This document shows positions 1 through 62,357 of a DNA stretch of 64,000 nucleotides, in pieces. The notes beneath the pieces are model-generated. The model ran no database searches and had not been told where the DNA came from. It was given only the letters and a program-made list of their open reading frames with translations. The position numbers and the translations under genes were made by a program. This DNA is from Mytilus californianus (lineage: Eukaryota): the NCBI RefSeq assembly GCF_021869535.1, contig NW_026262581.1:11222001-11286000 (forward strand), in the 5' to 3' direction. Numbering within the stretch: position 1 is the first letter of the stretch; each line of letters opens with the position of its first letter.

Positions 1-10
1 AATAACGAAT

Positions 11-3330: not shown

Positions 3331-3562
3331 CCACAGTAACAAAATCATTGTCATCCAGTACATGTTTAATGGCGTCATCTTGATCTAAAATTGCCCCTCC
3401 TTTGGCTTTTCTCACTTCGAATACTTTTTCTATAGCATGACCCGAGGAACTCTTGGCTTTGTAGTATCTCCTTAATGTCTCCTCTCCCAGCCATTTTACA
3501 CTCTCGGCCCCTTTGCATGGTACAGCAAACCAATCTCCTCTCACTCGAGCAGATAGTTTCAT
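3331..3562 (-). CDS. HAL: Histidine ammonia-lyase, first coding exon (N-terminal Par3/HAL domain); the gene continues off the left edge
   Basis: MKLSARVRGDWFAVPCKGAESVKWLGEETLRRY...ILDQDDAIKHVLDDNDFVTV resembles the vertebrate HAL N-terminus (VHVRGEWLAVPC...WLGREAVRRY...LLDNEDRLEVALENNEFVEV). Phase-1 donor G|GTCAGT at 3331/3330. Confidence 0.88.
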
Positions 3563-6500
3563 TATTTTGAAGTTCTATCTTTATCCGATAAGAGTGTTGA
3601 CTGTTTGACCGGTTTATAGTGTATCAGGTGTGAGGTTCTGGACTCGTGGTTTATCTTGTTAACTAAACTGTTATCGAGACAAGATCAAATTATATGCTAA
3701 GTCAAAATACGACCAAGGAAAGCGAATTATATTTTGTATTTCTACGTGAACAATCAATATGTGGCACTGAGTTTATCTTTAAGGAATACTTCTTTCGGTG
3801 AAATATATCATAACTGGAAGTTGTGTTTCCTTGTAAATGTGATGATTATAGGGAGATTTCGATTTAACTTCAATGAGACAACAACCTAACAATACAAAAA
3901 AAAACACCAAAGGATGTACCTATTATAATTATTGATCGATTTTTATATTTAAAATGTAATGCATTGAAATAACGAAAATCGGCTGTGTAATAATTGTAAT
4001 ACGTCCCTAAAATTATAAGTAAAAAATCGCATACAACTTGTTATGAACACTTTTAGTTTCTCTTTGCGTTGTGTAAATTGTTATCGAAACACATACTTTA
4101 TGAAGGTCAGGACTGTATTTACAGAATACAGAATTATCGGCAAAACGTGCAGAAAAGGAAAAAATAAGAGAATAGAGAATAATGGGGTGGTAAAATATAT
4201 AGAAAAGAGAATAATATTATAGGCAAAATGAATGAAGAAGAGAGAAAAAAATTCGAAACTATAAAGAAAAAAGAAATAAAGGACCTCCCACCCAGACCCT
4301 CCTGTATGGAACGCCAAATTAACAGAAACTCAAATAATTAAGCCTCAATGTAAATAATTACACATAAATCTTTAATTTGAAATGCTGCACTATGTTGATA
4401 CTTACATTTTGACATAACTAATCATGTAGTTATCCACTTATGTAAACACGTTTGATCCTGCACCATGTTGGTACTTACATTTTGACATTAACATTGCACA
4501 GTTCGTGATTTTTCCAGGCTGCTTTTGGGGTCTTTACATCCATTGGAGGTATGTTGATTGATATTTAGTCTGGGGTCATGAGAACATATTCTATTTATTA
4601 GTGGTAATTGGGCATTGGACTAGCTTTCAGTAACTGCGAGTACTCTTCGATTGGTAATTTTTGACTTATGTCATTTTGTCAGTTGTTTTAGTACTTATAA
4701 TCAATCTGATATATTTATTTTCCGTTCAATAGTATTAGCTTTAATCGTTATTTTTCTCTTATGAATTGTTTCACGTTTTCTTATCCTGATGTCTTTTGTA
4801 GCTTATAATACGGTTTTTGAGATTTGTTCATTGCTGAAGGCCGTAAAGTGACATGTATATGTTATCATCCTTGTCGTTTTTGTTTGTTTGTTTTTTTTTA
4901 ATTTTTTGTTTGTTTGTTTTTTGTTTGTTTTTATCTTTCATGGATATTTGTATCACTGGCAATGATACCACATTTTCTTCTTCATGATTAAAAATGAATG
5001 TATTTGGTCAGAGAATACTTGCATGTATACTTATTGTTTACTTAATAAATTATCTTATTTATATTTTTTTATATTCAGTGTATATTAAACGTCATTTCAT
5101 GTCCATCCAGAATAAACCTGCCCTTATCAGTAAATGATTATATTATTAACAGAAGTGGAGCATAAGTGAAACACATGTGAAGAATGCATACATATAACAT
5201 AAGCTTATCGGTCTTCGACATAGGTAAATAAGATACGAGGGGGTAATTAAGGGTCTTGCTTATGTCTGGCGTAAGGGAGATAACTATTAAATGTCTGTAA
5301 CTCGTTTGTGCATTTTTACCAGATTTTTTTTTAACTGGAATAGTTTTACTCTACCAAAAATTCAATGGAGATACCAGAAATTTTTATAAAGGTACAAGGA
5401 TAACAAGCGAAAATAGGTAGATAATGACGTATCAGAAATTAATTGATTGGGAGGTTGGGAAATAACTCTTTCGACATCGATTTTTTAGAGATCATGCGGG
5501 GAAATTTGAACATTATTGTGGATAAAACAATGAAGGTGTATTGTTTCAGTGGGTGTATTGTTTCAGTGCTTAGTGGTAATTTGTTCTTAACTATGTGTCT
5601 CTTGTCTTCAAACATGCACAGCTAAATTCTTGAAGAAATGGTCTACATAACCAAGTACAAAGCAATGCTTAAAGATTTCTTACATTTGCACAAATAGTAT
5701 TTAGAAAGTGACCGACTATCTGTTAAAGTTAAGAGACATTGTAATTAAAATCTGCCAGTTTAGATGGAGTCATTGCAATCTTCGGGAAAGAAACAAATCT
5801 AAGGCACAAACCATTTACCATGTGTGTGGAGGAAGAGAGAGGTCAGTTTTTTCTCTCTCGGGACACACTTTTTTTCAACTGTAACAATTACAAACGTTTT
5901 TCCTATAACATACAGGAACAAGAAACAAAGTTATAATAAGTGTTGTTTATATTTTATTTTTAACTAATTTTCAAAAAGATGTACTTACAAGCTTTTTTTT
6001 AGCTTCCCTGCTTAAAAATGTTTTAAAGAACACACACACACACACACAACACGCACGATTGGTGTCTTGTGGTGTCAATAGTACAGTTCGTCCCAAAACT
6101 AAAAGTATAATTTTTTTTCTGTATTTAGAGAAGTTCCTTTGTGTGCCCAACTCTCAAGATTACCCATAAGCTCATTTGCCTAGTAATTGATAATAAGCTC
6201 ATCATCACTAACTTGTACAGCAAAATTGGTAATTTCCCGTATTGAGCGTCTCTCTTCTCGTCCTTGAAATATTAAACGACGCACAAGTTAAGCAACAACC
6301 TAATGTATTTTCAACTGGCACTATGGATACCCAATAAAATTATAACTGATCATAAGCATAAAAGGATATATAGCTATACATATAACAATACCCTACACAT
6401 AAATAGGCAAAATTAATTTTCAATTTAATTTTGGCTGTTCATGTGTGCACACATACTCACGCATACGGTACCGTCGGGTAAACATAAGAAAAAATGAACA

Positions 6501-9070: not shown

Positions 9071-9810
9071 TTACACCATTGGAACTACTCTTGAATAATT
9101 AAATCTGATGTATTTGATATGTTATGATTTACCTCTAAAGATGAAACTACATGTAGGCTAGCTCTAAACCAGTTTTGGATTTGGAGGTCAACTTGCTGTT
9201 TTCTGCTGTACATGTTCTTATTTGGCTCTTCTCTGAAAACATCTCTGACCTAGGAATCCCTATAGGGATGAATTTTTTTCTCTTGATATTGATTACATGA
9301 ATATGAATCATTAAATGAATAATATTTATTTTCAAACATGTAAAACAGGTTGGGGACAACCAGCAAAACGGGAATAGTTCCCCGGTACCTCGAATCGCCG
9401 AATAAGACCGTTATTAGCCAAATAACACTTGTAATCACCGAATAACACTTGAAATTTTAATATAAGCACATATTGGTGACATTTAAACATTGATTATTAA
9501 ATAATATTGTATTATAAGTGTATTGTTTAACTTAAAAATGATTTACAGAAAGCAGGTAAGTTCATAAAGATCGCATTAAATATTAGTGTGTACATCCAAC
9601 ATGGCGACCAAGGAAAACACAATGGGAAGAATAAAAGAATGATTGCATATGCATACAAAGGGAAAAGCTATGAAAATAAAATATTAAATAATGTACTGTA
9701 TATACAGAGTATTGTATTAAAGATTTTCATTGGCAAATATTAATGTTTTTACAAGTTACCAAAAATTGGTATAAAAACATGTGAAGACATATGTGCTGTC
9801 TTCCATTTTT

Positions 9811-10000
9811 AAAATGGCTTTATATCCTTGTGTTGATTGCACAATTCAGTGCAGTAGTTGTGATCGTTGGGTTCACAGTGCTTGTGTCCCAATGAATGAT
9901 TCAATGTTATCGGCCTGGTCAGATGTGTCTCTAAAGTTCCTATGTAAGGACTGCTGCTTTACAGACAACAAGTACCAGTCAGGGGTACTACTTAAACAAG
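9811..10000 (+). pseudogene. PHD-finger fragment inside the MULE
   Basis: MALYPCVDC(internally shortened)TIQCSSCDRWVHSACVPMNDSMLSAWSDVSLKFLCKDC shows the C-x2-C-x4-H-x2-C...C-x2-C PHD pattern. Confidence 0.75.
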
Positions 10001-10935
10001 TGATTTCAGAATCACTTCCTCAAGTGATTTTGGCTGTGAAGTATTAAAAATTTTCACACAGACTTTTTAAAATCACTGAAACAAGTAATTTTAGAAGTTA
10101 AAATGTAATCACTTTAATAAGTGTTTATAACATTTTCTTGATATTTTTCCCACAAGCTTGATTTTTTTATTGGTAAAAAGACAACAATTCCATTGAAAAA
10201 ACAACTACATGTGTATGTACATGCAGAAATTGTCTTTTGCTTGATAAGCCCGACACTTTTACAGTTTTTTTAAAATATGCAAAAACTGGAATAGTTTGTA
10301 GATCAGGTCATAACCTTGAAGTAGATCATTCTAACTCTAAAGAAAACCAATCAGGTTACCTAATATTGTTGATCTTTGTCTGATAGTAAGAGTAGTTAAT
10401 GAATTTTTGATTACAGAAAAATTCCCAAGGGTACTTTTAAAAGCTTTAGCGCACTAACTTACTGCCCAAGCGCACTGGTGAAATTAATATACAAAGAAAA
10501 AGGGATAATTGATTTATGTAGGAAAATTATAGAAAAGATTGTGAAAATATGGAAAATCAATGAAATTAGCATTTGAAGATCAAAGAAAACACTAAAATCA
10601 CTTAAATAGGTGATAACTGAATTTATCAAATCACTGAAATAAGTGATGATGAAATCACTTGTTTAAATAGCACCCCTGACTGAGTACGTCATGGCCAAGT
10701 CCCTAGAAAGGTAAGTAATTTTATAAAGTATATTTTCAACATAATATTTATTAGAATGTATATGAAATATATAAAGAACAAATGTGAAATTGTACATATT
10801 TAATTTTAATGAAGACATTAATTTCACTTATTCGATTATATTTAACTTGTTTCTTATTTAGATAAAATTAACCTGTGAACGTTTGTTGTTCAAATACCAA
10901 GCTTTAAGTCTTTAATTGAATAGTTTTAAAATTAA

Positions 10936-11088
10936 TTTGGTACATACGCTGACATGATGCATATGTATGCACTGAGTGCCGCAATGAAGATACCGATCCG
11001 ATCTTATTTCCCCCCGCAGGATGGAATCAACAAAAAAGATAGAGAGTCCGTACTAGACAGCATCTTCGGTGACCAAGGACTATTATAA
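10936..11088 (+). pseudogene. Vertnin/OTU-like fragment inside the MULE
   Basis: FGTYADMMHMYALSAAMKIPIRSYFPPQ resembles the vertnin-family motif G-x-Y/W-x-x-M-x-H-x-Y-A-L-S-x-x-L-x-x-P-I-x-S-x-Y/F-P, recognised from memory. Confidence 0.55.
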
Positions 11089-11094
11089 GAAATA

Positions 11095-15289: not shown

Positions 15290-16997
15290 ATGAATCCAGT
15301 TTTGTCAGACAACACTGTGTTTACAGGGTATTCATCATTTAATGTTCATACATCTGTTTTCATGAAATCTAAAAGTAAATCCAGGTGTTTCTGTCAACAC
15401 TGCTTACAGCAAAGGCAGAGTAAATCTATGTGTGTCCGACAACTCTGTCTCGAGGTAAGCAGAGTGAATTTATATGTGTCTGACAACACTGTCTACAGGG
15501 AAAGCAGAGTGAATTAAGGTGTGTCTGACAGCACTGTTTACAGGGAAAGCTAAGTCAATTTAGGTGTGTCCGACAACACTGTCTACAGAGTAAGCAGAGT
15601 GAATCTAGGTGTGTCTGACAACATTGTCTACAGAGTAGGCAGAGTGGATCCAGGTGTTCTGTCAACACTGTTTACAGGGTAGGCAGAGTAAATATATGTG
15701 TGTCCGACAACACTGTCTACAGTTAAGCAGAGTGAATCAATATGTGTCCGACAACACTGTCTACATGGAAAGCAAAGTGAATTTAGGTCTGTCCGACAAC
15801 ACTATCTACAGACAGGCCTAGAATTAAAGACTGCCTGACAATTTTTTTTATAGGTTAAACAGAGTGAATCATGATACATCTGACAATACTGTATACAGGG
15901 TAAGCTGAGTGAATATATAGGCGTGTCTGACAATACTGTCTACAGGCCTATGGTAAGCATAGGTAATTAAGGTGTGTATGGCAACACTGTCGTGTAAACA
16001 ATGAATCCAGGTTTATCTGACAACATTGTCTACAGGCCTAGGGTATACCTGGTAAGCAGAGTGAATTAAGGTGTGTTTGACAACACTCTCTACATAGCAA
16101 GCAGAGTGAATCTATGTGTGTCCGACAACACTGTCTACAGGGTACAGAGTGAATCAATGTTTATCTGACAACACGGTCTACAGGGTAAGCTGAGTGAATA
16201 TAGGTGTATCCAACAACTGTCTACAGGGTTGGGAGAGTGAATCCAGGTGGGTCGACAACAATGTCTACAAGATGAGCAGATTTAATCATGGTATGTCGGA
16301 CAACACTGTCTAAAGATAAAAGACGAGTGATACATGGTTTGTCCGACAATACTGTCTACAGGGTAAACACCGAATCAAGGTTTTTCTGACATCACAGTAT
16401 ACAGGGTAAGCTGAGTGAATATAGGTGTGTACGACCACACGATTTACAGGCCTAGGGTAATACTAGTGAATTTAAGTGTGTATGGCAACACTGTCTACAT
16501 GAAAAGCTGAGTGAATTAAAGACTACCTGACAATTTTTTTACAGGCTAAACAGAGTGAATCATGATACATCTGATAATGCTGTATACAGGGTAAGCTGAG
16601 TGAATATAAAGGCGTGTCTGACAATACTGTATACAGGCCTATGGTAAGCATAGGTAATTAAGGTGTGTATGGCAACACTGTCGTGTAAACAATGAATCCT
16701 GGTTTATCTGACAACATTGTCTACAGGCCTAGGGTATACCTGGTAAGCAGAGTGAATTAAGGTGTGTTTGACAACACTCTCTACATAGCAAGCAGAGTGA
16801 ATCTATGTGTGTCCGACAACACTGTCTACAGGGTACAGAGTGAATCAATGTTTATCTGACAACACGGTCTACAGGGTAAGCTGAGTGAATATAGGTGTAT
16901 CCAACAACTGTCTACAGGGTAGGGAGAGTGAATCTAGGTCGGTCCGACAACAATGTCTACAAGATGAACAGATTTAATCATGGTATGTCCGACAACA
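15290..16997. repeat. 45 bp satellite array, left part
   Basis: Degenerate tandem unit GTGTCCGACAACACTGTCTACAGGGTAAGCAGAGTGAATCTAGGT. Higher-order duplication with a 692 bp period (15821 vs 16513). Confidence 0.93.
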
Positions 16998-17592
16998 TGT
17001 AACGAAGTCAGTAAGTGGATAAATAATTTTTATTATGTAATTACAAAGTTAAGACTGTTTCTAAAGTTCAAATGTTAGATTGTTCACAAACTGTCTCTAA
17101 AGTTGAATTGTTCGAATGTTCATATCGTCACACGGACACGTGATCATATAGTGGTATAACTGTTCGGTCCAGACTGAGTAATTCGGATGGTTAGTGAATT
17201 AATTCCAGCCTACCCACAAGGGGGGAGACCTTGGCGGAATCTCCTGTCGGATTCTCTCTGTACGAATCTATCCTTCGAGTCCAAAGCTGGATCTTATATA
17301 GTTCAGAGGGGTCATCCATCGTTACACAATGGCCCATAGCTGTAGGCCAGTTACGTAGTAGTCTGGTTGTGGAGTAATACTAGTCTGTGGTTAATTGTCA
17401 AACTATGCAATTAACCCCTGACGGATACATGTTATTTCACAGTAGACATGGTCATTTATTGGCTGCAGGGTATATGTCTATAATATTCGTACAGATTGTT
17501 ATTAAGTGTCTAAAGGTTACATGTAATCGTTTCGGATTTGCTGTATTTAGTTACTTCCGGATGATTAACGTATGGAACACAATTGTGTTACA
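16998..17592 (-). repeat. 3' LTR
   Basis: TG...CA termini; I found only 3 substitutions relative to 20231-20825. Confidence 0.95.
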
Positions 17593-17610
17593 TAATGCCT
17601 TCCATCCAAA
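17593..17610 (-). other. Putative polypurine tract
   Basis: Minus strand reads GGATGGAAGGCATTA immediately before the 3' LTR. Confidence 0.5.
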
Positions 17611-17699
17611 ATAGAACGAAAGTTCAATAAAATACGGTATTTTTCTTCCTGTAGGTTATTCTAATAGTTTAATTATTGTAAGGTTTCCCTTAACCATCA

Positions 17700-18840
17700 C
17701 CACATATCTATAGTTCATAAAATGCGGCAAGTCCAACATCTGGACACATAGAGTTCATATGATTCATAAATTCAATATTTGGATATATATTGTGCATACT
17801 TTTTCCCGTCACCATTATAGCATATTGTTCATCAACTGCTGGAAAGGGCCCACTTTTGTACATGTGTCTGTCATCATCATCTCCATTACGAAGTAGTTGA
17901 CGCATCTAGCTGGTTAGTTCATCCTTCTTAAGAGGCTGTTAACATCGGCCTTCGGTTAAGTTTCGTCCTTGATCAATGGCGCAGAGGAAGACATCTCTCT
18001 GGAATCAGTAACATCTGTCCCAACCAATCACGTAGACACCATTTTGTACCCATTGTTCGTGGCATTAGAACAAAAACTCACACCTTTCTTTTTGGCCAAC
18101 CAAGATACATTCTGAACAAATTAACAGTACAAAAATATGGCTATTCCAATGAAGATCGCACCTAAACCCCACTGATAAACTTATCTCAATTTGGAAAAAC
18201 TTAAACTTGTTAACTTCCTCTTATTTCTTTTTTATTTATCAATCAGATTATTGATAGTTTGTTCACTCGCCTTTAGGTCGCTGGGTTATTCAAGCCTAGC
18301 AACATTTTGTAAAACAATTCCTATATATAAATCAATACGTTCTTTTTTTATATCGAATTATCTGTTTAAAACAAACAAAAAATAAAAGGGGGAAACTGTT
18401 GTATTCAACTTCTACAAGTTTGAGAATCCTACATTATAAAAAAAAATATGTGTATTTACACAAGACGTGAGAAAATCATTATAAATTTACAATCAAATAA
18501 GTTCAATTCGATCATTTTATATAACCCTACACCTACATGATACCTATAAAAATAAATACTAAAATTTTTATGTGTTACTTCGTTACCAATTGTAATACTT
18601 TTACTTCTTTAACCTTAGTGTCTCATTATTTAATCTTACGCTAAAAATACACCACAGATTTATTCTCATTACTCTTAAAAAAAATCATTCATGTAAGATT
18701 CCATTGATAAAATTTTAACTACGTCTAGCACAAACTAAGTTACTGACTCTATATTTCATATTTGACTACAACACCTTGTTGCGAAAAAAAAAATGTCTTT
18801 CTCCTTAATCTATTACATTTTTCCAAAATTAGTATATAGT
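17700..18840 (-). pseudogene. Decayed envelope-like ORF with a transmembrane segment
   Basis: Stop-interrupted frames read ...HVGVGLYKMIELNLFDCKFI...KLNTTVS...SKLR*VYQWGLGAIFIGIAIFLYC*FV, with Cys motifs, an N-x-T sequon and a hydrophobic anchor near the 3' LTR. Confidence 0.4.
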
Positions 18841-19899
18841 TTCCTCATCAAAATATTTCCTTTCTTTTTTTATATATATATTTTTTTTTTAATTTGCTTT
18901 TTAAACTTCAGCAACTAACTGCCTTTTCTTTGTTATACATTTCAATATTGTTGAGATTTTATTCATTCTTTTTTTTTTAAACTTGACTTATTTCTTAAAA
19001 ACCAAAACAATTTAAAGTTTTTTCTATGCTTATTTATGAACAAAACCCATTGCTTAGACTCATTATTTGTTTTACTACTAAATTGATTATTTTCTTATTC
19101 TTATTTTAATTTTTGATAATTATCCTCATAATTTAAAAAAAAAAAAATCTATTTTATTTTAATGCTAGTTTTCCTTTAATATCAATTATCTATTTCACTT
19201 AAATGTTGTCATTAGTCATGAAGTTCATATGTCTCTCATTTTTTACAAATATCGATCTACCACAAAAATACTGTAAATCCCTTAGGGCAAAACATATCAA
19301 CATTTATCTTTAATGTGCTATTTTCTGAAGATACTTCTCTTTATCTATTAACATTTATTTTATGTAAATAAGGCGTAATCTAACACCATAAAACAACTTG
19401 CACCATTTAATTACTTAACATCACTTATGTTAATCATCCGAAGAAGGGGTTGGAATCTAAAATTATAGACTATTTGTTTTTCTCTAAACAAACGTGCATA
19501 CACACTACCCAACTGCGTAAACCATAATCGTCAATGGCTAAAATATCGCAAACATATGAACCCACAATGTACCCTTAACTTCATCTACCAAAGGTTCTAA
19601 ATCAGCCTTCATATATACCGGTGCTCTGCTAATTTTACGTAAGATATATATTTTCTAGAATAATTAAATGTATCTTCAAGAAAACAACCCATATTATATA
19701 TGATCAAAAACCATAAATACGAAAAAATGCTATAGTATCAGACATTTTACTTTTTTACATATTTACTCTAAACGAAAAACTAGCTTCTTCAAACTAAAAA
19801 AAAAGTTTTATTTTTAAGAATCATACTTATTATATATAAAGTATCCTATCTATTAAATAACTGCATATAAAAATAACTAAAAAATTATCTTCAATTGTT

Positions 19900-20124
19900 T
19901 TAAGAATATGTGTATTCATAATTCTTAAATTGACGAACAATTTCTAAAAATACTAATAAAAATTTCGTGCGAACCACAGCTCTTGAACAAACTTCTGATT
20001 TTAAGCCTTTTAAATATACGGCCTCACTCCCTTTAAAATTAAAAACTGTACTTAACATGTGTGCCATCCCTTGAAAAGCCATTTCTACTTTTTGCACTGA
20101 CATAGAAATATCTTGATCGTCCAT
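19900..20124 (-). pseudogene. First ORF after the PBS, probable gag N-terminal remnant
   Basis: MDDQDISMSVQKVEMAFQGMAHMLSTVFNFKGSEAVYLKGLKSEV starts about 70 bp after the PBS. The call is positional. Confidence 0.45.
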
Positions 20125-20196
20125 AAAGAAAAAAAATGAAAGTAACTTAGTTCTTACGTTTTATATTCCTTTGCGTTGTTTAAGCGTGATTCCAAG

Positions 20197-20219
20197 TCGA
20201 TCCTGCTGTCTCGGCACCA
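20197..20219 (-). other. Primer-binding site (tRNA-Phe/His-like)
   Basis: Minus strand TGGTGCCGAGACAGCAGGATCGA, 11 nt from the 5' LTR. Confidence 0.75.
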
Positions 20220-20230
20220 AATTTACGACT

Positions 20231-20825
20231 TGTAACGAAGTCAGTAAGTGGATAAATAATTTTTATTATGTAATTACAAAGTTAAGACTGTTTCTAAAGT
20301 TCAAATGTTAGATTGTTCACAAACTGTCTCTAAAGTTGAATTGTTCGAATGTTCATATCGTCACACAGACACGTGATCATATAGTGGTATAACTGTTCGG
20401 TCCAGACTGAGTAATTCGGATGGTTAGTGAATTAATTCCAGCCTACCCACAAGGGGGGAGACCTTGGCGGAATCTCCTGTCGGATTCTCTCTGTACGAAT
20501 CTATCCTTCGAGTCCAAAGCTGGATCTTATATAGTTCAGAGGGGTCATCCATCGTTACACAATGGCCCATAGCTGTAGGCCGGTTACGTAGTAGTCTGGT
20601 TGTGGAGTAATACTAGTCTGTGGTTAATTGTCAAACTATGCAATTAACCCCTGACGGATACATGTTATTTCACAGTAGACATGGTCATTTATTGGCTGCA
20701 GGGTATATGTCTATAATATTCGTACAGATTGTTATTAAGTGTCTAAAGGTTACATGCAATCGTTTCGGATTTGCTGTATTTAGTTACTTCCGGATGATTA
20801 ACGTATGGAACACAATTGTGTTACA
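20231..20825 (-). repeat. 5' LTR
   Basis: TG...CA termini; contains a TATA-like CTATATAAG on the minus strand. Confidence 0.95.
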
Positions 20826-23800
20826 AACACTGTCTAAAGACAAAAGACGAGTGAAACATGGTTTGTCCGACAACACTGTCTACAGAGTAAACAGAGTGAA
20901 TCAAGGTTTTTCTGACAACACGGTATGCATGTCAAGCTGAGTTAATATAGGTGTGGCCGACAAAACTGTCTACAGAGTAAGCAGAGTTAAATCAGAGTGT
21001 GTCTGTCTACACTGTATACAGAGTAAGCGTCCTTTCTGATATCGTGCATCTGTTGCCTTGAACTAAATTATTGAATTCAGATGTGTCATGCCACACTGTC
21101 TACAAGGTTAGCATCTTTTGATTTTCATACATCAAATGTCATGACCTACAAACAAATGGAATCCAGGTGTGTCTGACAAAATTGTCTTAACTGTATGCAG
21201 AATGAATCTAGATGTGTCCGACAACACTGTCTACAGGGTAGGCAGAGTGGATTCAGGTGTTTCTGTCAACATTTTTTACAGGGTAGGCAGATGTTTATAT
21301 AAGTATGTCCTACAACACTGTCTTCGGGTAAGCAGAGTGAATTTAGATGTGTCCGACAACACAGTCTAAAGGGGAAGCAGAGTAAATTAAGATGTGTCCG
21401 ACAACACTGTTTAAAGGGAAAGCAGAGTGAACTCAGGTGTGTCCGACAACAATATCTACAGGCCTAAATAAAGCATAGTGAATTTAGGTGTTTCCGACAT
21501 CCCCGTCTTACGAGACTTCATTCTGAATTTAGGTGTGTCTTAAAACACTGTATACGGAGTAAGCAGAGTGAATCTAGGTTTGTACAGTCTACAGGGGGAA
21601 GAGCTGAATAAATATAGAAATGTCCTACAACACTATCTACAGGCCTCGGTTAATTATAGCGAATTTAAATGTGTCCGACAACACCGTCTACAGGGTCAAC
21701 AGAGTGAATCAAGGTTTATCCGACAACACTGTCTATAGAGTAAGCTGAGTGAATATAGGTGTGCCTGACAACACTTTCTTCAGGCCTAAAGTTAGCATAA
21801 AATTTTAGGTGTGTCTGACAGCACTGCATTCAGGGAAAGTAGAGTAAATTAGATGTGTCCGACAAAACTGTCTACAGAGTAGGCAGAGTGAATTAAGGTG
21901 TGTCCGACATTGTTTACAGGATAAGCAAGGTATATTTAGGTGAGTTCAACTACACTGTCTACATGATAAGCAGAGAGAATTTAAGTGTGTCCGACAACGC
22001 TGTCTTCAGTGTAAGCATAGTTAATCTAGGTGTGTCGGACAACACTGTCTACATGGTTAACAGCGTGAATCACGGTTTGTCTGACAACACAGTTTATAGG
22101 GGAAGCTAAGTAAATATAAAATTGTCCGACGACACTATCTACAGGCCTCAGGTAAGTATAAAATTTAGAAAAGTCAGACAACACTGCCTACAGGGAAAGC
22201 AGAGTGAATTTAGGTGTGTCCGACAACACCATATACAGGGTTTAAAAGAGTGAAACAAGGTTGATCTGAAAACACTGTCTATAGAGTAAGCTGAGTGAAA
22301 TAAGGTGTGCCTGACAACAACCTTCAGGCCTAGAGTTAGCATAAACAAATTTAGATGTGTCTGACAACACTGTATTCAGTGAAAGCCGAGTGAATTTAGG
22401 TGTGTCCAACAAAACTGTCTTCAGAGTAAGCAGAGTGAATTTAGGTGTTTCCGACAACACTCTACAGTATAAGCAAAAATGAATCTAGGTGCGTCTGACA
22501 ACACGGTCTACAGAATAAGCAGCGTGAATCTTGGTGTGTCGGACAATACTGTCTACAGGGTAGACAAAGTAGACAAAGTGGATTCAGGTGTTTCTGTCAA
22601 CATTTTTCACATGGTAGGCAGAGTTAATATATCTGTGTCCTACAATGTCTTCGGGTAAGCAGAGGGAATTTAGATGTGTCCGACATCGATGTCTAATGGG
22701 AAAGCAGAGTGAATCAAGGTGCGTCCGACAACACTATCTACAGGCCCAAAAATAGCATAGTGAATTTAGGTGTTTCCGACATCCCTGTCTACCGAGATTT
22801 TATAATGAATTTAGGTGTGTCCTTCAACACTGTATACAGAGTAAATCTAGGTGTTTCCCACAACACTGTCTCAAGGGTGAGCAGAGTAAATCTAGGTGTG
22901 TCCGACAACAATGTTTACAGGGTAAGCAGTTTAAATCTTGGTGTGTCCGACAACACTTTCTACAGGGTAGGCAGAGTGGATTCAGGTGTTTCTGTCAACA
23001 TTTTTTACTACAGGGTAGGCAGGTGTTTATATAAGTGTGTCCTACAACACAGTCTCCGGGTAAGCAGAATGAATTTAGATGTGTCCGACAACACTGTCTA
23101 AAGGGAAAGCAGAGTGAACTCAGGTGTGTCCGACAACACTATGTACAGGCCTAAAGAAAACATAGTGAATTTAGGTGTTTCCGACATCCCTGTCTTACGA
23201 GACTTCATTCTGAATTTAGGTGTGTCTTAAAACACTGTATACGGAGTAAGCAGAGTGAATCTAGTTTTGTACAGTCTACAGGGGAAAAAGCTGAATAAAT
23301 AAAGAAATGTTCTACAACACTATCTACAGGCCTCGGTTAATTATAGCGAATTTAAATGTGTCCGACAACACCGTCTACAGGGTCAACAGAGTGAATCAAG
23401 GTTTATCGGACAACAGTGTCTATAGGGTAAGCTGAGTAAATATAGGTGTGCCTGACAACACTATCTTCAGGCCTACAGTTAATTAGAACAAAAAATGTTA
23501 GGTGTGTCTGACAGCACTGCATTCAGGGAAAGTAGAGTAAATTAGATGTGTCCGACAAAACTGTCTACAGAGTAATAGAGTGAATTTGGGTGTGTCCGAC
23601 AATATTGTTTACAGGGTAAGCAAGGTCTATTTAGCTGAACAAATAAAGAAATGTCCTACAACACTATCTACAGGCATCGGTTAATTAAAGCGAATTTAAA
23701 TGTGTCCGACAACACCGTCTACAGGGTCAACAGAGTGAATCAAGGCTTATCTGACAACAGTGTCTATAGGGTAAGCTGAGTAAATATAGGTGTGCCTGAC

Positions 23801-26150: not shown

Positions 26151-26649
26151 CTTTGTTTGTCACGTATACTGTCTCTTCGGGGCAAGTATTCATATTTGCA
26201 TAGTCAAACTTGTACACTAGTAACTACTAAAATGACAAAATTCATTCCAGATGGACTTGTACACCTTACAATCATTCCATACACCAAATACAGATGAACT
26301 GTTGCTTAGAGTATCTGAGTAACAGACCAAACCACAAAAACTCTAAATCGATAAGTGAACAATGAAAAAAAGGTCAGATAAAACCTTCCAGTTTAACATG
26401 TACACTTTACAAACATTTCATACACCACATATAGTTGACCTATTGCTTATAGCATGGAAGTATTATATTGACATGCTTATAGTATCAGAGATACGGACTT
26501 CACCATGAAAACTTAACCTTCATCACTGTTTGATCCATAAAATGAGGTGGAGGTCAGGTGAATTATTTCATACAGACATGAAGACCTTGCAAGGATCCCA
26601 TATACCAAACATAGTTATCTTATTACTCATAAATGAGTATTTCATGACA

Positions 26650-34989: not shown

Positions 34990-35308
34990 CGTGTGTTTTC
35001 TTCTGTGAATCGATTAATAACAACAGCGTGGTCTTTTCGTTCGCCGCCGGTGGTAAATAAATAATGAGGAATTATTTCCCTATCGGAAAACGAAACATTG
35101 AATTAAAAATAATTTTATTTACAGATCATACATTGAACTTTCTGAAATAACATTAGAATGAGTGATTCTATTTAAATTGAATAGAGTTTTATTGTTGAGG
35201 CTTCTTCAAATACACATAAACATATAGGTAATTAAAATTCGTTTTGTATGAAAAATTCAAAAAAAACATCAAGTTATTTCCCTTTTTGTATAAAAATAAT
35301 GGAATGAA
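34990..35308. promoter_or_regulatory. Putative bidirectional promoter of SNRPF and MED20
   Basis: Divergent ATGs at 34989 (minus) and 35309 (plus), 319 bp apart. Confidence 0.7.
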
Positions 35309-41300: not shown

Positions 41301-41770
41301 AAATATCCTACAGTGTACACATGAATTGGAGAAAACTTGAAGAAAACTTATCAGTGCAAAAGTTTTCGTCTGAAAAGAATATATTTTCTAAGAGTAACTG
41401 TCCTTTGTTACTTAGATAGATGAAAAGGAGAAGACATATGGGCTTGTTTCAAGAATAAACTTTATTTTTTTGTGAGTTTAAATGAGCATTGCTGATCATT
41501 AATCGATTATTATCTCCCACAATAGATGATGATTAAATTTTATTTCATATATTATAGGTAGAATACTGTCCATGTGTAGTAGCTGGTGATTGTTGGAATC
41601 TCATCAAAGAAATGGCACAAAGCATTGTGGGAAATGTAGCAGACAATCCACCCATGTACATAAAAAATAAAACAGATCCTGTATATTCTCCATCTGACAC
41701 AGTTAATCAGTATCTAGAACATTTTAATAACTTCAGGAAAACAGCACCTCAAGGACAGCCCAGTAGATGA
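35309..41770 (+). CDS. MED20: Mediator subunit 20, 213 aa; exons 35309-35322, 36274-36416, 37699-37970, 41558-41770
   Basis: MGVVC|[42 protein letters not shown]...|ISQRLIHILHNSEHPASCFA...GILVE|VEYCPCVVAGDCWNLIKE...DTVNQYLEHFNNFRK matches MED20. GT-AG introns with consistent phases. Confidence 0.96.
38811..41050 (-). mobile_element. Composite HINE-like element in MED20 intron 3
   Basis: Hairpin TATACGACCGCAAAAATTTTTGCGGTCGTATA at 38816-38847; internal arrays of about 160 bp, 35 bp and about 130 bp units; 5' motif GCTCCGCAGGGCGCAGCTTGATACGACC on the minus strand. Confidence 0.85.
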
Positions 41771-51200: not shown

Positions 51201-54200
51201 GCTTTGTTGTATTACTTTCCGTTACACTTTTTACTAGATATGACCCTAGAATCGCATAATGACGCACACTTAAAAGGAAATGCTTTTATGCAAATACTTT
51301 GTCACCAGAGCTGATATCACTTCGGTTTGAGACATTGCGATGTCGATCATTTCGATCCAATTTTGTTGGTTTTTGTGTGAATTTTAACTTCATATTTATA
51401 CCCCCGCTGCAAAGAAGGAAATGGCGTATACTGGTTTACGTCTGTCCGTGTTTCTGTCCATCCTTCCGACCGTGTTTCCGTCCTATAAAATTTCTTCGCC
51501 TATTTCTCAGGAACTACAAATAAGAACTTCCTAACAATTGGTACCAAGGTTCATGTAAGCATACTATACAATGTGATGCATTTTCACATTTATCACTCAT
51601 TACGTTCCTGTTAATCGAACACTTTCATATTCTTATTTCTACAATTTGAGACCCATACGATGATCTCAGTTCTTCTATCGTGAGTAGAGACATACCAACT
51701 GCCCAGCCTATGACGTAAATTTGTCCAAGTTTGTGTAACAATATGAAAAATGTACATTTTGTTTAAATGTACATTAAATTTTGTCATATTCTTACAAATA
51801 TATATGAAATTTTCGTCGCAACTTTCCCAGGGTCTACCGGTCTGGAATCAAACTTTATGTGAGCATGCTCAACCGAGTGATGCATTTTTTCAACCATCGC
51901 TTATCAACTTCCTGTTCACCGAATACTTATAGCGGGGTATTATCAGTGAGCAATTGCCCACAGATCAACATTTGTAAAATACCTGCACAGGATAATATCC
52001 TCCAAGATATGGATTGTGACATGAGGTTTGATCTGAACCTAGTTCTACTAATAGATCGCCTGTATTCTCATATTCTTCTACGAATCTTTCCCTATCAGTA
52101 TAAAAAAATAACTATAGTAATAACTTTTCTTGGTTAAAAGACACTTAAATTATTTTTTTGAATAATTGATAAATTTTTTGTTGTCGAAAACGTGCTGAGA
52201 ATGTGGTCCAGATATTCTAGAATATATATACTATATTTGCTATTATCAATTTTCCTAGCCGTATATACCATTCACTTTTTGCGTATATTTTTTAGAAGAA
52301 AATAAACTGAATGCAGACAAAACATACTAGTAATTAAAAAAGAATTGGTTATTAATCATCATGTTAACATACTAACCATAAATCTACAATATTTCCATGA
52401 TACCCAATGCTGATAGCTTCTTTCTGACGTCTTGCGTGTCGTATTTTACCAATACATTCGTCCAAGTTGTTTGCGATGGTTGCAACCCATCCTTGGTTGT
52501 GGCGTTTCTCTAAAGCCTCTTTACTTACCTAAGTGATAAAAAGCCACATTTAAAATTCACTATCTTCTCCTTTTGTTACTTTGATTATTATTCTGACAAT
52601 CTTGATATTTTACAGATGCTTGATAACAGTGGTAGTGTCATTTTCCCAAAATGATAATACTAACTTGTTGCTTACACACGTTTAATGTATTTGGGTGTGG
52701 AAACGCTTTCTGGAGTTTTAATATCATTTTAAGGTGATCATTTTTTTTTCGTATTTGTGTAAATTTTCTGCTTCAATTACAATTGACAATGAACACAAGA
52801 ACACAAGAACAACAACAAAGCAGTTGAATAAGAGCAGCTCATTTTTACAGCTTTACTGCTTTGATAACGACTCAAAATGAAGCATAACAGAAAACCGCTT
52901 ATCTTAAAAACTATCATCGACTAAACACTGTGGAATATATAGTTACAACGTTTGGTTTACTTTTTGTATTTTCTAGTTGAAGTATTGGTTTCTTTACGAG
53001 GCATACACTGTATGCATATCCACGAAAGCATTTAAATACGCTATAATTGTTAAATCAGTATAGTATTTCATTAAAGAGAAAATAAATAGTGTGAAAGTGT
53101 GACAACTTCAAACAAAAAAATAATAATAGTCAAAACAAAAAAAAAAGAACATGAAAGCAAAATAAAAATAAAATGCTCCGCAGGGCGCAGCTTGATACGA
53201 CCGCAGAGGTCGAACCCTGAACAGTCGGGGCAAGTATGGACACAACATTCAAGCTTGATACAGCTCTGAATTTGGATTGTGATTGAATATTTGACACAGC
53301 ATAGGTTACTGACACAGAATGAATGTGGTCTAAGAACTTAAAAATTTTAAATTGGACATTCACCTATTATGGTCCAATATCCAAAATCTAAATACATGGT
53401 TAGATTCAGCATATCAAAGAACCCCAATAATTCAATTTTTGATGAAATCAAACAAAGTTTAATTTTGGACCGTTTTGACCTCAATGTGGACAAAGTTCAT
53501 AACGGGGCCCAAAAATCAAAAATCTAAATACATGGTTAGATTCAGCATATCAAAGAACCCCAATAATTCAATTTTTGTTGAAATCAAACAAAGTTTAATT
53601 TTGGACCCCGATTTGGACCAACTTGAAAACTGGGCCCATAATCAAAAATCTAAATACATGTTTAGATTCAGGATATCAAAGAACCCTAAGAATTCAATTT
53701 TTGTTAAAATCAAACTAAGTTTGATTTTGGACCCTTTGGACCTTAATGTAGACCAATTTGAAAACGGAACCAAAAATTAAGAATCTAAATACACGGTTAG
53801 ATTCGGCATATCAAAGAACCCCAATAATTCAATTTTTGATGAAATCAAACAAAGTTTAATTTTGGACCCTTTGGACCTCAATGTGGACCAATTTAAAAAC
53901 GGGGCCCAAAATCCAAAAACTTAATACACGGTTAGATTCAGCATATTAAAGAACCCCAAGAATTCAAGAATAAAACCCCATTGAAATAGGTCAAGAAATA
54001 AGCATTTTATACGAAGTATCTTCTTTTGCACAATACTGTGCAATTGAATATTTCTTACTATTGAGCAATACTGTACAATTGACATTTTTTTGCTATTGCG
54101 CAATATTGTGCTATTGGATATTTCTTGCTATTGCGCAATACTGTGCAATTGAAGATTTCTTGCTATTGCGCAATACTGTGCAATGGAAGATTTCTTGCTA

Positions 54201-57200
54201 TTGTGCAATACTGTGCAATTGAAAATTTCTTGCTATTGTACAATACTTATTATATAATAATTTACACATCCTGTTTGGTGTGTATCTCCTACCATATCAT
54301 TATTATTTGCTTTTAAATATAAATCAGAAATAACCAACTTAAAATGGAAAATTTTAAAAGAAAAAAAAAAAGGAAAAAAAGAAAAAAAGGAAAACAAAAA
54401 ATCCCCCCCCCCCCAAATTTTTTAAAACCCCTTATGATTCATCACCCCCAAACTCAATCCCAGCCTTCCCTTTGTGGTATGGTACCTTGCAGTACAATTT
54501 CAGAGAGATCCATACACTTGAACACAAGTTATTGTCTGGAAACTAGAAAAATGCTTGTTTTAAGGCCCCTTTTTGGCCCCAAAATCCTAAACGTTTAGGG
54601 CAATTACCCCCAAACTCAAACCCAGCTTTCCTCTTGTGATATGGAACCTTGTAGTACAATTTCATAAAGATCAATACACTAACACACAAGTTATTGTCCT
54701 GAAACTAGAAAAATGCTTGTTTTTTCCCCTTTTTGGTCCCTAATTCCTAAAATTTTGAGGCAATTACCCCCAAAATCAATCCCAGCCTTCCCTTTGTGGT
54801 ATGGTACTTTGCAGTACAATTTCAGAGAGATCCATACACTTGAACACAAGTAATTGTCTGGAAACTAGAAAAATGCTATTTTTGCCCCCAAACTCAATTC
54901 CAGCTTTCCCTTTGTGATATGGAACCTTGTAGTTCAATTTCAGAAAGATCCATACACTTACACACAAGTTATTATCATGAAACTAGAAAAATGCTTGTTT
55001 TTTGCCCCTTTTTTGGCCCCTAATTCCTAAAATTTTGAGGCAATTACCCCCAAAATCAATCCCAACCTTCCTTTTGTGGTATTGAACCTTATGGTAAAAT
55101 TTCACGGAGATCCATTCACTTAAACTAAAGTTAGAGTGCGAAAACCAATGTGTCTTCGGACGACGACGACGACGCCAACGTCATACCAATATACGACCAA
55201 AAATTTTTAAATTTTTGCGGTCGTATAACTAGGGACATGACCCCTCCAGCATTTTTTTATTTGTTCATTTTCAGTTACGAGAGACTATAAAAAATGTTTT
55301 GTTTGATATTGAACAGGTGTACCTCAGCTGTTACACTTATACATCCACATATTGTTGCTGCCTTTGGTTGTGCCCCACTCATTCCACCCAATCCAGATGT
55401 AACGAACACCTAAAATCGAATTTATATTTATATATACATTTTATCTTCTCGGGAACTGGCTGTTAGAATAACAGTGTATACTCATACATTTTATACTCTT
55501 TTAATTATCAAAACAATATAAGGTTATCATTACATTATACCGGTTTTCTGCAACTAGATTTTTGTGTTTTTTGCTGTTTTATATTTGAAACTTCTAGATT
55601 TTCGAATATTTGGTTTCGATCACCACTGAAGACAAATATTTTCGAAATGCGCATATTGTTTAATAATTGAACTTTGGTATCTTCTAATTTTATATTTTCA
55701 TAAATGTCGATAAACATAAAATATGCAAATATTAATAATGATAATAATGTTTTGATCAGCCGTCAAGCATCTCACAAAAATGATTGTGTGAAAATAACAA
55801 ATTATAAAAAGAAAAGAAAGTATATTCGGAAGGTCTATTTTGATGAAGGCAAACTAATGTTACGCTTAAAATATAGCAAAAATTGTCTTTGTAAATTTGT
55901 AAATAAACAAATGCTGGTTTACCTTTCCCCTCATATCCGTGGTACCCAGATGTCGCCTAGCTGCATTCAGTACTGTCAACTAAAATATTAAAGTGAGATG
56001 TGACATCAAGAAATAAGATTTGTTTGAATGTAGTATTTATATATTGAACATTAAAAAGTCGTCAATGAAGATCATTAAAGTTTTTTTTATGTATATTAAT
56101 AATATATTCTTTATCCGTTTGACAATAGAGAGTCTGGACTTTCATTTCTGTATCGTTCACCATAAAGCGGCGTTGTCAATCAGTAAATCCATGTTCGGAG
56201 GAAAACTTAGAATCACAACTTCAGTATAATTTAGCTTACCGTTGTGCCATGAACTATCCCTTGTGGTCCTATATAGCAGAAACTACCAGCTGTCATCTGA
56301 CCATACCTGATTAAAAATGAAACAGTTAAAACTACTCTATCAGTTTTCGTACAATCTACCAATGACCAACCATTACTCGCGTTATTTAGAATTTCATTTG
56401 TAGCCTATGTTCAGGTAGAGATGTAATCATTCCAATATCATGCACCCAAAAACAGTATTTAGAATTAACTCAGTTTAAAAAAGAAAACTTACATTGTGTT
56501 TCCGAGTGCAAACATTTTCTCGTACATTTCTCTTGATGAGTAGTTTGGTATGACCTATAATATAAAAAAAAATTTAATGAGTTTGTTCTCGGTAATAGGA
56601 CAAAGTATTGATACTTTTTTTTAAACCAAAACGATTTGTTATTCATAAAATACATTAAAAAAAAAGATTGTTACTTTATTCTTTAATAGGTGTTTCATAA
56701 TTCACATTTTGTCCTAGTATTGACTGCTGGAAGACAATCCACAATTCATCATAAACTTTGTTTAAAAAAGCTGAAATTTTGTTCATTAGAGAGAACAGTA
56801 TCAAATGATACCAATAATATTTGAGTATTGTATTTTTGTCATAGGCCCGTCGTCGTCTGTTTTGTTTGGTTTTTTTTGGAATTTGGAGGTTGCAACTACA
56901 TAATTTGTTTGTTTCCAGAATCTCAGAGTATGCAGGGTAAAAGAAGGATCATATTAAAAAAGTATAATAAAAATACCAGTCTCAAAGGCAACTACAAAAG
57001 GGGAAGTCCATGAAAACTGACAAAATCAAACTTTATCAATCAACGGAACAAGTGAAAAACAACTGCTATATTCCGGATATGGTCAGGCATTTTTCGAAGA
57101 AAATGGTGGGTAAAATCTGTTTTATAGCTAGTTTACATGTTGTTGTTGTTTTGGCCGCATATAAAACCGTGAAAAAACTTTTATTTGTTTTTTCCTGGGG

Positions 57201-60200: not shown

Positions 60201-62357
60201 AGTGGTTGTAAAAATTTAATAAAAAATACCGGGCTTATAATATAACACGTAATACGCATGTTTTGTCTACATAAGACTCAGCAGTGGACCTGGTGCTGGA
60301 ATTCAAACAGTTGGAAGGCCAATTACGAAGTTATAGAGCAATAAAAACCAAAAATTCCAAGTGTTGTGCCAATTCAGACTTAGGCCATATATGTATAAGG
60401 GTAGGAAAACCTTAGTGTTCTAAATTATATTTACGGTTAAGTAACAGTTAATTTACAGATAATGACCGAATTATTGGTATTTCATGCACAGCAAATGAAC
60501 ATTGATTACAACTACCATACTATCAGAAAATCATCGGAAATGACCGTATCAAGGATATTCCTTGTCAGTATAAGAGCACCCCCAACTGGGCAGGTGATAA
60601 TCATACCTTCATGAGTTGGATCATATATATTATACTGATGTTGATTGGGGTAGCATTATATAAATTTGCAAGCTTCAGTTGTGCCGATTTCTTTGACTTT
60701 GACATATTAAGATTAGTGAAAACTACCGCAAATGGATAGGGATTTCCAATTAGAGGAAGGAAATGTTTCCATAAGTCTTGAAAGGGTATGAATCAATAAC
60801 GGCAACAAGACAATACAAGTCGGTGTGTACGCGTTTGGTAACGAGTCTGCTGCATTTTGTGAAAATTGTTTAAAAGATTATGAAGAAAAGTTTTTTAATT
60901 TTATTTTTTTTCATATTTTTTTTTTACCGAGGCAACTAACTGCCTCGGTTGCCTAAACGTAAGCTACGCCAATGTTAAATCGAGGTAGAAACGTCCATCA
61001 ACAGTGACATCGACCCAGTGGTTGTAAAACTCATCAAAGATACCAGTCTTATAATGTAATACGCAGTGCATGAGGTTTAACTTCCCAAAAAATGCCTTTA
61101 CCAGGTCAGGAATATGACAAGTTTTTTTTCTGTTCGTTCCGTTGGGTTATAAAGTCTAACGTTTGATTTTGTCAGTTTTATAGACTTTTCCCCTTTTCGA
61201 ATTTACGTTGGAGTTCGGTATTTTTGTTATAGTTTTTCGTCTAAAAAGACTCAGCAGTTGGCCTGGCACTGGAATACACGCAGTAAGTAGTCCAAATTAA
61301 TTGCATATAAGCTATAAAACCAGGTTCAATCTACATAAGAAAATGCCTGTACTAAGTCAGGAATATGACAGTTGTTATCCATTCGTTTGATGTGTTTGAG
61401 CTTTTGATTTTGCCATTTGATTAGGGACTTTCCTTTTTGAATTTTCCTCGGAGTTCAGTATTTTTGTGATTTTACTTTTTGAAGAGCGTTGAAAACGCAA
61501 AATTCCTATTTGTTGTGCCAAATCAGGCTAGTGCCATATATATATATTGGGATAGGAAAACCTTTGTGTTTTGAATGATATTAACGCTTTAGTAACAAGA
61601 AATTTATAAAAAATTACTGTATCAATCATATGTCATGTCAGTACAGGTCATATGACCATATAGCTTCAAAAAACAATATCGAGGCTAGTGAAGAAAGCGA
61701 AATAATTTCCTAGTTTTGGTTATGGTATATTTTACCTCATATCAAACGAAGGTAAAAGCCTGTACATGTATATATGGCCGTAATTACGTAATTCATCGGC
61801 AAACTCATGGGCTAAAATTTCATGCTGGTCTGGTGGAAAGTATCGTAGTGCATTCTGTAGTGCTAGCTAGAAAGTAAATGTAAATTTGGTCATTAATTAA
61901 ATCACATTGTTTTATCTACCGTTTAGTTTGAAGTATTATCACAAAATCTTAGATACTTAATGGTATTCAGACAGCTGCACAATGTCATTGGGTACTATCA
62001 TATAACCAGTCACTATTGTCAGGGAATATGAAATATACCTAATGTCAGTAATTATTTATGATTTATGAGGTTTCCCTGTGAAAGATTGTGCAGTACATAG
62101 ACAAGAGGGTACCGGAATCTTATGTCCACAACTGTTCTTGAACCTTTGACTGGAGGTAAACAAAACTAACAGGATCGAGACAAATTGAACAGAAAACTTA
62201 TATTGATCTCAATAATTAAAGTGTGCGAACTTACCCTCTGTTCGGCCGGTGTTAGATCAGGTGTCCTGATCGGTGCATGTGGGACTGTATCATCCCTCTG
62301 ACGCCTCGGTGGGAGAGGGTCTGGGATACCGTCACATATCTCTTTCAGCGAAGACAT
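42267..62357 (-). CDS. UROC1: Urocanate hydratase, complete, 20 exons, 676 aa
   Basis: Exons 62235-62357, 61736-61866, 58484-58637, 57657-57785, 56493-56554, 56240-56306, 55923-55979, 55323-55409, 52377-52528, 51983-52091, 50606-50676, 50011-50108, 49281-49389, 48234-48322, 47419-47588, 46915-47014, 45237-45318, 44056-44104, 43343-43393, 42267-42407 total 2031 nt with all phases consistent. Motifs: FPQELVTYGGNGQVFSNWAQ, YGQMTAGSFCYIGPQGIVHGT, VFVTSGLGGMSGAQ, LGSDQTSCHNP, FWDYGNAFLLE, SRDHHDVSGTDSPFRETSNIYDGS, GATWVALHNGGG. Confidence 0.98.
44165..44885 (-). mobile_element. 5'-truncated Penelope-like element (RT C-terminus plus 3' tail) in UROC1 intron 17
   Basis: Minus frames read IYPIELEIKDTTDT...KLYDKRDDFSFPIVNFPFLCSNIPAAP...LIRYSRAC, followed by the GGAGCAGGATCTGCTTACCCTTCC tail. 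Confidence 0.8.
45618..46340. mobile_element. Kolobok-type MITE, 723 bp
   Basis: TTAA TSD (45614-45617 and 46341-46344). Perfect TIR GGTAGCACAATACAAAGATTT with a purine-purine terminus. It splits a Penelope-tail repeat. Confidence 0.85.
48680..48902 (+). mobile_element. Tail-only copy of the Penelope-associated short repeat
   Basis: GGAGCAGGATCTGCTTACCCTTCCGGAGCACCTGAG...GGTATCTTTCGCCTCTCTTTT, the inverse of 44165-44400. Confidence 0.75.
50901..51735 (+). repeat. 97 bp direct repeat (50901-50997 and 51639-51735)
   Basis: CTACAATTTGAGACCCATACGATGATCTCAG...GTCCAAGTTTGTG occurs twice with one substitution. Confidence 0.9.
53171..55228 (+). mobile_element. Composite HINE-like element in UROC1 intron 8, inverted near-copy of 38811-41050
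   Basis: Same termini and the same three internal arrays in reverse order and orientation. Confidence 0.85.
58947..59034. repeat. Perfect 88 bp palindrome with no spacer, in UROC1 intron 2
   Basis: ATCTTCGCTAGCCAAGGGTTACGATCCACTTCCCTCCTCTCCAC|GTGGAGAGGAGGGAAGTGGATCGTAACCCTTGGCTAGCGAAGAT. Confidence 0.97.
59840..61640 (+). repeat. Degenerate tandem copies of an interspersed repeat of about 350 bp, in UROC1 intron 2
   Basis: ACTCATCAAAGATACCAG...CGTTT(C/T)GTCT...GGCCATATAT...AACCTTAG recurs near 59850, 60210 and 61030. Related fragments lie at 47800-47930 and 50260-50370. Confidence 0.65.

Follow-up and report, generated by a model that had tools for sequence, protein, structure and literature searches.

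The genes UROC1 and HAL, whose products act at consecutive steps of the hut pathway of histidine catabolism, lie on one strand and 38.7 kilobases (kb) apart in a stretch of 64,000 nucleotides from the mussel Mytilus californianus (assembly GCF_021869535.1, contig NW_026262581.1, positions 11,222,001 to 11,286,000), which is called the window throughout. The window probably (a probability of about 0.65) preserves part of an ancient neighbourhood of animal genes. It represents a new case of conserved animal microsynteny, unusual in linking consecutive enzymes of one pathway. Full-text literature searches on HAL/UROC1/AMDHD1, on UROC1/MED20/SNRPF and on the synteny of animal hut genes, which do not cover supplementary lists of microsynteny blocks, found no paper on the subject.

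HAL and UROC1 in the mussel window

The window is gap-free (0 runs of N) and has a G+C content of approximately 33%. Along the minus strand, to which HAL and UROC1 both belong, the order is UROC1, MED20 on the opposite strand, SNRPF, about 25 kb of repeats and HAL, and the distance of 38.7 kb is measured from the HAL ATG to the UROC1 stop codon. The original prediction, made from the sequence, placed HAL exon 1 at 3331-3562 and a complete UROC1 at 42267-62357, on one strand and about 39 kb apart; these coordinates are exact, the strand is the minus strand, and the two ends given for UROC1 are precisely its start and stop codons.

UROC1 exons were placed using the long-form urocanase of a Chondrinema litorale plasmid as guide. 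The complete coding region (62357-42267, minus strand) is formed by 20 exons: 62357-62235, 61866-61736, 58637-58484, 57785-57657, 56554-56493, 56306-56240, 55979-55923, 55409-55323, 52528-52377, 52091-51983, 50676-50606 (followed by a GC donor), 50108-50011, 49389-49281, 48322-48234, 47588-47419, 47014-46915, 45318-45237, 44104-44056, 43393-43343, and 42407-42267 (stop included). Eighteen introns are of the GT-AG type and one, intron 11, is GC-AG (donor 50605-50604, AG/GCAAGT). The spliced model has a stop-free reading frame of 676 amino acids, and its exons match the Pfam models Urocanase_N (PF17391) and Urocanase_C (PF17392). The protein is 97.6% identical, ungapped and over its full length, to the RefSeq urocanate hydratase of M. 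edulis (P0382), which carries Urocanase_N, Urocanase and Urocanase_C. It shares 68-75% identity with UROC1 of a unionid, a nemertean, amphioxus, zebrafish, a coral and Nematostella, and 59.6% with the long-form urocanase of Chondrinema litorale (Bacteroidota). Identities of 60-75% to annotated urocanases suggest that mussel UROC1 would convert urocanate to imidazolonepropionate with tightly bound NAD+.

HAL, the gene for histidine ammonia-lyase, is represented by its first coding exon (3562-3331, minus strand), which starts with an ATG at 3562, has 77 codons and one additional base, and is followed by a GT donor (3330-3329). The 77 residues (3562-3332) match the Pfam model Par3_HAL_N_term (PF12053) with an expect value (E) of 4.5e-9. 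This domain also occurs in Par3, and a PDB sequence search with the exon gave weak matches to the N-terminal domains of TONSL and Par3 only, so the domain alone is no proof of HAL. The match to the ubiquitin-like domain of Tonsoku-like protein has an E of 0.014 and that to the Par3 N-terminal domain is likewise weak; these similarities suggest that the HAL N-terminal domain, the TONSL ubiquitin-like domain and the Par3 N-terminus may have a small fold in common.

The identity of the exon was settled by a search of a representative library of 1.8 billion proteins, which returned 167 matches. Among 10 longer matches, eight had a second Pfam domain, and in all eight this was Lyase_aromatic. The best match is the HAL model P0001 of M. 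edulis, in which the Ala-Ser-Gly of the G-A-S-G-D-L motif is present. P0001 and the M. galloprovincialis HAL model P0261, which encodes 657 amino acids over 22 kb, have N-termini that match the window exon at 98.7% identity, and in both models the matching N-terminal exon is joined to Lyase_aromatic (PF00221). The assignment of exon 3331-3562 to HAL, part of the original prediction, is thus borne out by these orthologues, where the exon is spliced to the HAL catalytic domain; by comparison with them, the window exon is probably spliced to a Lyase_aromatic domain as well, with the remaining exons beyond the left end. No second HAL exon is recognisable in positions 1-3330 of the window, which are intronic and include a 78-bp tandem repeat of 17 copies (1655-2978, 97% matches in Tandem Repeats Finder). 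A candidate second Mytilus HAL paralogue, P0405, was rejected, its low identity being due to 98 gapped positions in a shortened model. The annotation of M. edulis assembly GCA_905397895.1 (CAJPWZ010000887.1) breaks HAL into two models, of 332 and at least 230 amino acids, and has a 155-amino-acid single-exon model inside an intron.

Two conserved genes lie between UROC1 and HAL. MED20, which encodes Mediator subunit 20 (35309-41770, plus strand), has exons at 35309-35322, 36283-36416, 37699-37970 and 41558-41770, three of which match the Pfam model Med20 (E of 4e-9, 7e-21 and 1e-5); they are 57% identical to the Med20 that adjoins UROC1 in the nemertean Lineus longissimus. MED20 and UROC1 are tail-to-tail, with their 3' ends (stop codons) 0.5 kb apart. 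SNRPF, which encodes Sm protein F (32290-28697, minus strand), has exons at 32290-32165, 31653-31589 and 28763-28697 (stop included), and a possible upstream mini-exon carrying the ATG was not located. It matches the Pfam model LSM (E of 1.4e-11), and its first exon is 89% identical to the 88-amino-acid LSM gene that adjoins MED20 in Lineus. MED20 and SNRPF are head-to-head in the mussel (32290-35322) and in Lineus (locus positions 24280-26950), where 142 bp separate them, and they look like a conserved bidirectional housekeeping pair of its own. Three small housekeeping genes had been claimed between HAL and UROC1, of which only these two conserved ones were verified; codon-bias ranking, Pfam searches of 30 open reading frame (ORF) pieces and PDB searches of the window gave no third conserved gene.

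Linkage in other animals and its explanation

The animal UROC1 query was an intron-free coral transcript, found by scanning metagenome contigs with UROC1 exon 3, and 12 genomic look-ups were made, each showing 10 kb either side of the gene. In the unionid bivalve Sinanodonta woodiana (CM100996.1), UROC1 (97,084,621-97,146,099, plus strand) is followed by HAL (97,274,641-97,300,553, plus strand) in the same order and relative strand as in the window, with a gap of 128.5 kb and locus tags that are three apart (ACJMK2_016936 for UROC1 and ACJMK2_016939 for HAL). In the coral Pocillopora verrucosa, HAL (minus) and UROC1 (plus) are contiguous and head-to-head, with 503 bp between their start codons. 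They are nearly contiguous in the sea anemone Nematostella vectensis, where HAL (minus) and UROC1 (plus) are also head-to-head, PIG-F (plus) lies between them, and the start codons are 5.1 kb apart. The first HAL exons of both anthozoans match Par3_HAL_N_term.

The genes beside UROC1 are conserved further. Lineus (OU342998.1) has UROC1 (plus), Med20 (minus) and the 88-amino-acid LSM gene (plus) within 3.5 kb, in relative orientations equal to those of the window, so that neighbours and orientations of UROC1/MED20/SNRPF are kept between two distant phyla. HAL of Lineus is on the same 21-Mb (megabase) chromosome, 6.2 Mb from UROC1. In the amphioxus Branchiostoma lanceolatum the order is a netrin-like gene (minus), UROC1 (plus), Med20 (minus) and then an E2 gene; UROC1 and MED20 are convergent, as in the mussel. 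The netrin-like gene (locus positions 1-5851), which has Laminin_N, EGF_laminin and NTR domains, is immediately upstream of UROC1.

HAL and UROC1 share a chromosome in nine of 11 chromosome-scale comparisons (Mya, Dreissena, Mercenaria, Sinanodonta, Lineus, Patiria, Asterias, Ptychodera and Rhinatrema), by calls that rest on host sequences of base-identical length and on species that share ancestry and are not independent trials. Since bilaterian chromosomes are broadly conserved, these cases are not independent, and they amount to HAL and UROC1 having been in one ancestral linkage group. Closer linkage was judged by rough per-species estimates of random placement on one chromosome, which give a probability of about 0.06% for a gap of at most 38.7 kb on approximately 126 Mb in the mussel and about 0.2% for a gap of at most 128.5 kb on 120 Mb in Sinanodonta. 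Direct adjacency by chance among about 25,000 cnidarian genes has a roughly estimated probability of 1 in 10,000, and the cnidarian look-ups were a directed test of the HAL-UROC1 pair, not a search over many pairs. On these rough figures the linkage appears tighter than chromosome sharing alone would give in Mytilus, Sinanodonta, Pocillopora (0.5 kb) and Nematostella (5 kb), and not in Lineus (6.2 Mb on 21 Mb).

Genes of the mussel window also occur in the HAL neighbourhood of amniotes. The gene order on dog chromosome 15 is NTN4, SNRPF, CCDC38, AMDHD1, HAL and LTA4H (PMC13332154), and chicken chromosome 1 has NTN4 at 45.60-45.63 Mb, SNRPF at 45.665 Mb and AMDHD1 at 45.669-45.680 Mb, with 2.4 kb between SNRPF and AMDHD1 (PMC6339939). 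Human NTN4, SNRPF and CCDC38 are described as neighbours (PMC4006731). The two loci are tied together by SNRPF, which adjoins UROC1-MED20 in the mussel and the nemertean and AMDHD1-HAL in amniotes, and also by netrin, a neighbour of UROC1 in amphioxus and of SNRPF in amniotes. In amniotes HAL is thus linked to SNRPF, as it is in the window, and to a second gene of the hut pathway, but this partner is AMDHD1 (step 3), while in the mussel it is UROC1 (step 2). We take the human counterpart of the NTN4-SNRPF-CCDC38-AMDHD1-HAL neighbourhood to be the one at 12q23, and mammalian UROC1 and MED20 are presumably located away from it.

AMDHD1 was searched with tblastn, using a bacterial HutI, which is a distant probe, and 10-kb flanks on each side of the loci. 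Unlike the amniote neighbourhood, the mussel window showed no AMDHD1-like sequence with this probe at E up to 1. There was likewise no HutI signal within 10 kb on either side of HAL in M. galloprovincialis, nor beside HAL or UROC1 in the other fetched loci; the gene within 10 kb downstream of M. galloprovincialis HAL encodes 167 amino acids and has no Pfam domain. The expectation that AMDHD1 lies in the flanks of the mussel locus gained no support from this weak probe and these 10-kb flanks, which is not a refutation.

The simplest reading of these arrangements, drawn from six or seven lineages and not from a tree reconstruction, is that the bilaterian ancestor had an order near netrin-UROC1-MED20-SNRPF-(AMDHD1)-HAL. 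HAL and UROC1 would have been linked before the split of cnidarians and bilaterians, and the mussel would retain UROC1-MED20-SNRPF-HAL out of the ancestral order. Bivalves would have kept UROC1 and HAL close, and scallops, gastropods, Lineus and vertebrates would have pulled them apart. Slow rearrangement, or constraints acting on MED20 and SNRPF as a pair, may be what has kept the mussel genes linked, with no necessary role for joint control of histidine catabolism.

Several observations weigh against a retained ancestral neighbourhood. By the lengths of their host sequences, HAL and UROC1 fall on two chromosomes in Babylonia and likewise in Ambystoma, and on separate scaffolds in Lottia, Lingula and Ylistrum. 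No UROC1 was found within 10 kb of HAL in the scallop Pecten maximus (neighbours RTCB, upstream, and an aminotransferase) or in Dimorphilus (neighbours TSR1, POLR3H and TTC5), and no UROC1 exon in the limpet Lottia, where no neighbour was called; in tblastx comparisons of these three HAL loci with the window, HAL exon 1 was the sole match. The cnidarian genes are head-to-head, with HAL 5' of UROC1, whereas the bivalve genes are on the same strand, with HAL 3' and, in the mussel, two genes between. Because the two arrangements differ, common descent requires rearrangement, and they could be independent. The Sinanodonta comparison covers UROC1 and HAL, the end genes of a span that has two genes between; in the other Mytilus assemblies collinearity is seen over the 10 kb upstream of HAL only; and the same-chromosome calls depend on matching sequence lengths and related species. 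The surviving metazoan linkage of the original prediction stands in part: it recurs in Sinanodonta and two anthozoans, but UROC1 was not found within 10 kb of HAL in the scallop, the limpet and Dimorphilus, and is 6.2 Mb away in Lineus. The mussel cluster is also a loose one, and its best conserved part is the MED20/SNRPF pair enclosed in it.

It is very improbable that HAL and UROC1 are neighbours in this genome alone, through chance or through an assembly error. Such an origin would fit with the single HAL exon in the window, with the 10 kb of minisatellite and the other repeats that separate SNRPF from HAL and are the easiest place for a misjoin, with the 28S rRNA fragment at the right end, which indicates that odd material is present, and with the UROC1-HAL link being seen in one Mytilus assembly; but the window is gap-free, M. 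edulis and M. galloprovincialis are collinear with it upstream of HAL, the independent assembly of Sinanodonta has identical order and orientation, and SNRPF, the gene that follows MED20 towards HAL, has a link to AMDHD1-HAL in amniotes as well. It is also quite doubtful that the linkage has two separate origins, one giving the head-to-head pair of anthozoans and the other the distant tandem pair of bivalves, by chance or separate selection, with the shared chromosome elsewhere being ordinary macrosynteny. The different orientations and intervening genes in cnidarians and bivalves agree with such an independent origin, as do the 6.2 Mb on the 21-Mb chromosome of Lineus, which equal the random-placement expectation, and amphioxus, which has no HAL within 10 kb of UROC1. 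The directed cnidarian test, with its chance of accidental adjacency of about 1 in 10,000, argues against it, and so do SNRPF and netrin, which bridge UROC1-MED20 of mussel, Lineus and amphioxus with the amniote AMDHD1-HAL locus.

Selection for shared regulation, which would make the locus a functional metabolic gene cluster, is an unlikely explanation of the linkage. In the mussel a common chromatin domain or enhancers would mediate such regulation, in cnidarians a bidirectional promoter, and UROC1 would thereby consume the urocanate made by HAL. The two enzymes catalyse consecutive steps of the pathway, the head-to-head arrangement of Pocillopora is kept in Nematostella, two lineages of bivalves retain the linkage over gaps of 39 and 128.5 kb, vertebrates keep HAL beside the third-step gene AMDHD1, and bacteria have a hutH-hutU-hutI-hutG operon, as on the Chondrinema plasmid. 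The 503 bp between the coral start codons suggest a shared bidirectional promoter, through which steps 1 and 2 could plausibly be controlled together. For the mussel the argument for such control is weak, given the 39-kb gap, the head-to-head MED20/SNRPF pair within it and the absence of a common upstream motif: the best match between the 1-kb upstream regions of HAL and UROC1 has 22.3 bits, and shuffled sequences have a mean of 23.1, so the proposed check for shared promoter motifs gave nothing above shuffled controls. The mussel genes are separated by two housekeeping genes that are unrelated to them as well as by 25 kb of repeats, many lineages have separated HAL and UROC1 and yet retain both with no sign of pathway loss, and the most rigidly conserved unit, UROC1-MED20-SNRPF, has no metabolic logic.

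Repeats and other features of the window

The remaining spacer between the genes has ORF fragments without recognisable domain, transposon debris, a minisatellite and other repeats. Arrays of the 45-bp minisatellite, detected by Tandem Repeats Finder, occupy about 10 kb within 15374-26061, with up to 96 copies, and fill most of the gap between SNRPF and HAL. They are interrupted by duplicated ORF-like segments, of which 17194-17611 resembles 20427-20937, and no conserved protein domain was found in the 15374-26061 spacer. Upstream of HAL, in a repeat-rich stretch, there is a PHD-finger ORF (9775-10044, plus strand, Pfam E of 1.4e-5), and near it is ORF 10936-11085 (plus strand), which has strong coding bias and no Pfam match; both may be transposon-derived. 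A composite repeat, which has sub-repeats of 135 bp, 35 bp and about 160 bp, lies at 38800-41200 in a MED20 intron and, inverted, at 53000-55200 in a UROC1 intron. Non-coding stretches of the window align with M. edulis and M. galloprovincialis contigs at 82-89%, with order kept.

Scans of the window for tRNA and Rfam families found a 28S rRNA fragment only. It corresponds to the first 509 positions of 28S rRNA (63427-64000, plus strand, 303 bits), is cut by the window end, and the UROC1 start codon is just 1.07 kb away. Upstream of this fragment, at the right end of the window, no 5.8S rRNA was detectable. The fragment may be an orphan piece of ribosomal DNA (rDNA), the border of an rDNA array or the result of an assembly join.

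Comparison with known gene clusters

The bacterial hut operon physically links genes for homologous enzymes that catalyse the same successive steps. On the Chondrinema litorale plasmid, hutH, the urocanate hydratase gene, hutI and hutG are in a row, and the C-terminal part of its HutH is 44% identical to Mytilus HAL. The animal genes differ in being separate transcription units with many introns, and those of the mussel have 39 kb between them, with MED20 and SNRPF in that interval, are ordered UROC1 then HAL instead of hutH then hutU, and have neither a polycistronic mRNA nor a hut repressor. It is conceivable, though improbable on the present evidence, that HAL, UROC1 and AMDHD1 formed one contiguous cluster in the ancestor of cnidarians and bilaterians, possibly derived from a bacterial-type hutH-hutU-hutI. 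Promoter sharing between head-to-head genes (HAL/UROC1 in anthozoans, HAL/AMDHD1 in vertebrates) would then have preserved pieces of it for more than 0.5 billion years, and the mussel would have a bilaterian remnant that joins steps 1 and 2.

Eukaryotic metabolic gene clusters, such as the DAL and GAL clusters of yeast and the secondary-metabolite clusters of plants and fungi, are tight, contiguous and shown to be co-regulated. HAL and UROC1 resemble them as non-homologous genes of one pathway that are near each other, but they are known from gene positions, the coral pair alone is tight, and the mussel pair is interrupted by MED20, SNRPF and about 25 kb of repeats. Conserved metazoan microsynteny blocks, reportedly described by Irimia et al. 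in 2012 and by Simakov et al. in 2013, are a closer parallel in that unrelated genes are adjacent with orientations fixed across phyla, which fits UROC1-MED20-SNRPF of mussel and nemertean and UROC1-MED20 of amphioxus. The mussel block is atypical among them in joining two consecutive enzymes of a pathway.

To our knowledge, animals are usually said to be without pathway-based gene clusters. HAL and UROC1 are neighbours in corals and a sea anemone, close in two distant bivalve lineages, and connected via MED20, SNRPF and netrin to the vertebrate HAL-AMDHD1 pair. If this linkage is ancestral, it would provide a testable case of whether shared regulation or slow rearrangement holds metabolic neighbours together in animals, in which the putative 503-bp divergent promoter of the coral is directly testable, and it would give an evolutionary context to the known adjacency of HAL and AMDHD1 in vertebrates. 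If only inertia is involved, UROC1-MED20-SNRPF would still be a useful new microsynteny marker from Lophotrochozoa to chordates.

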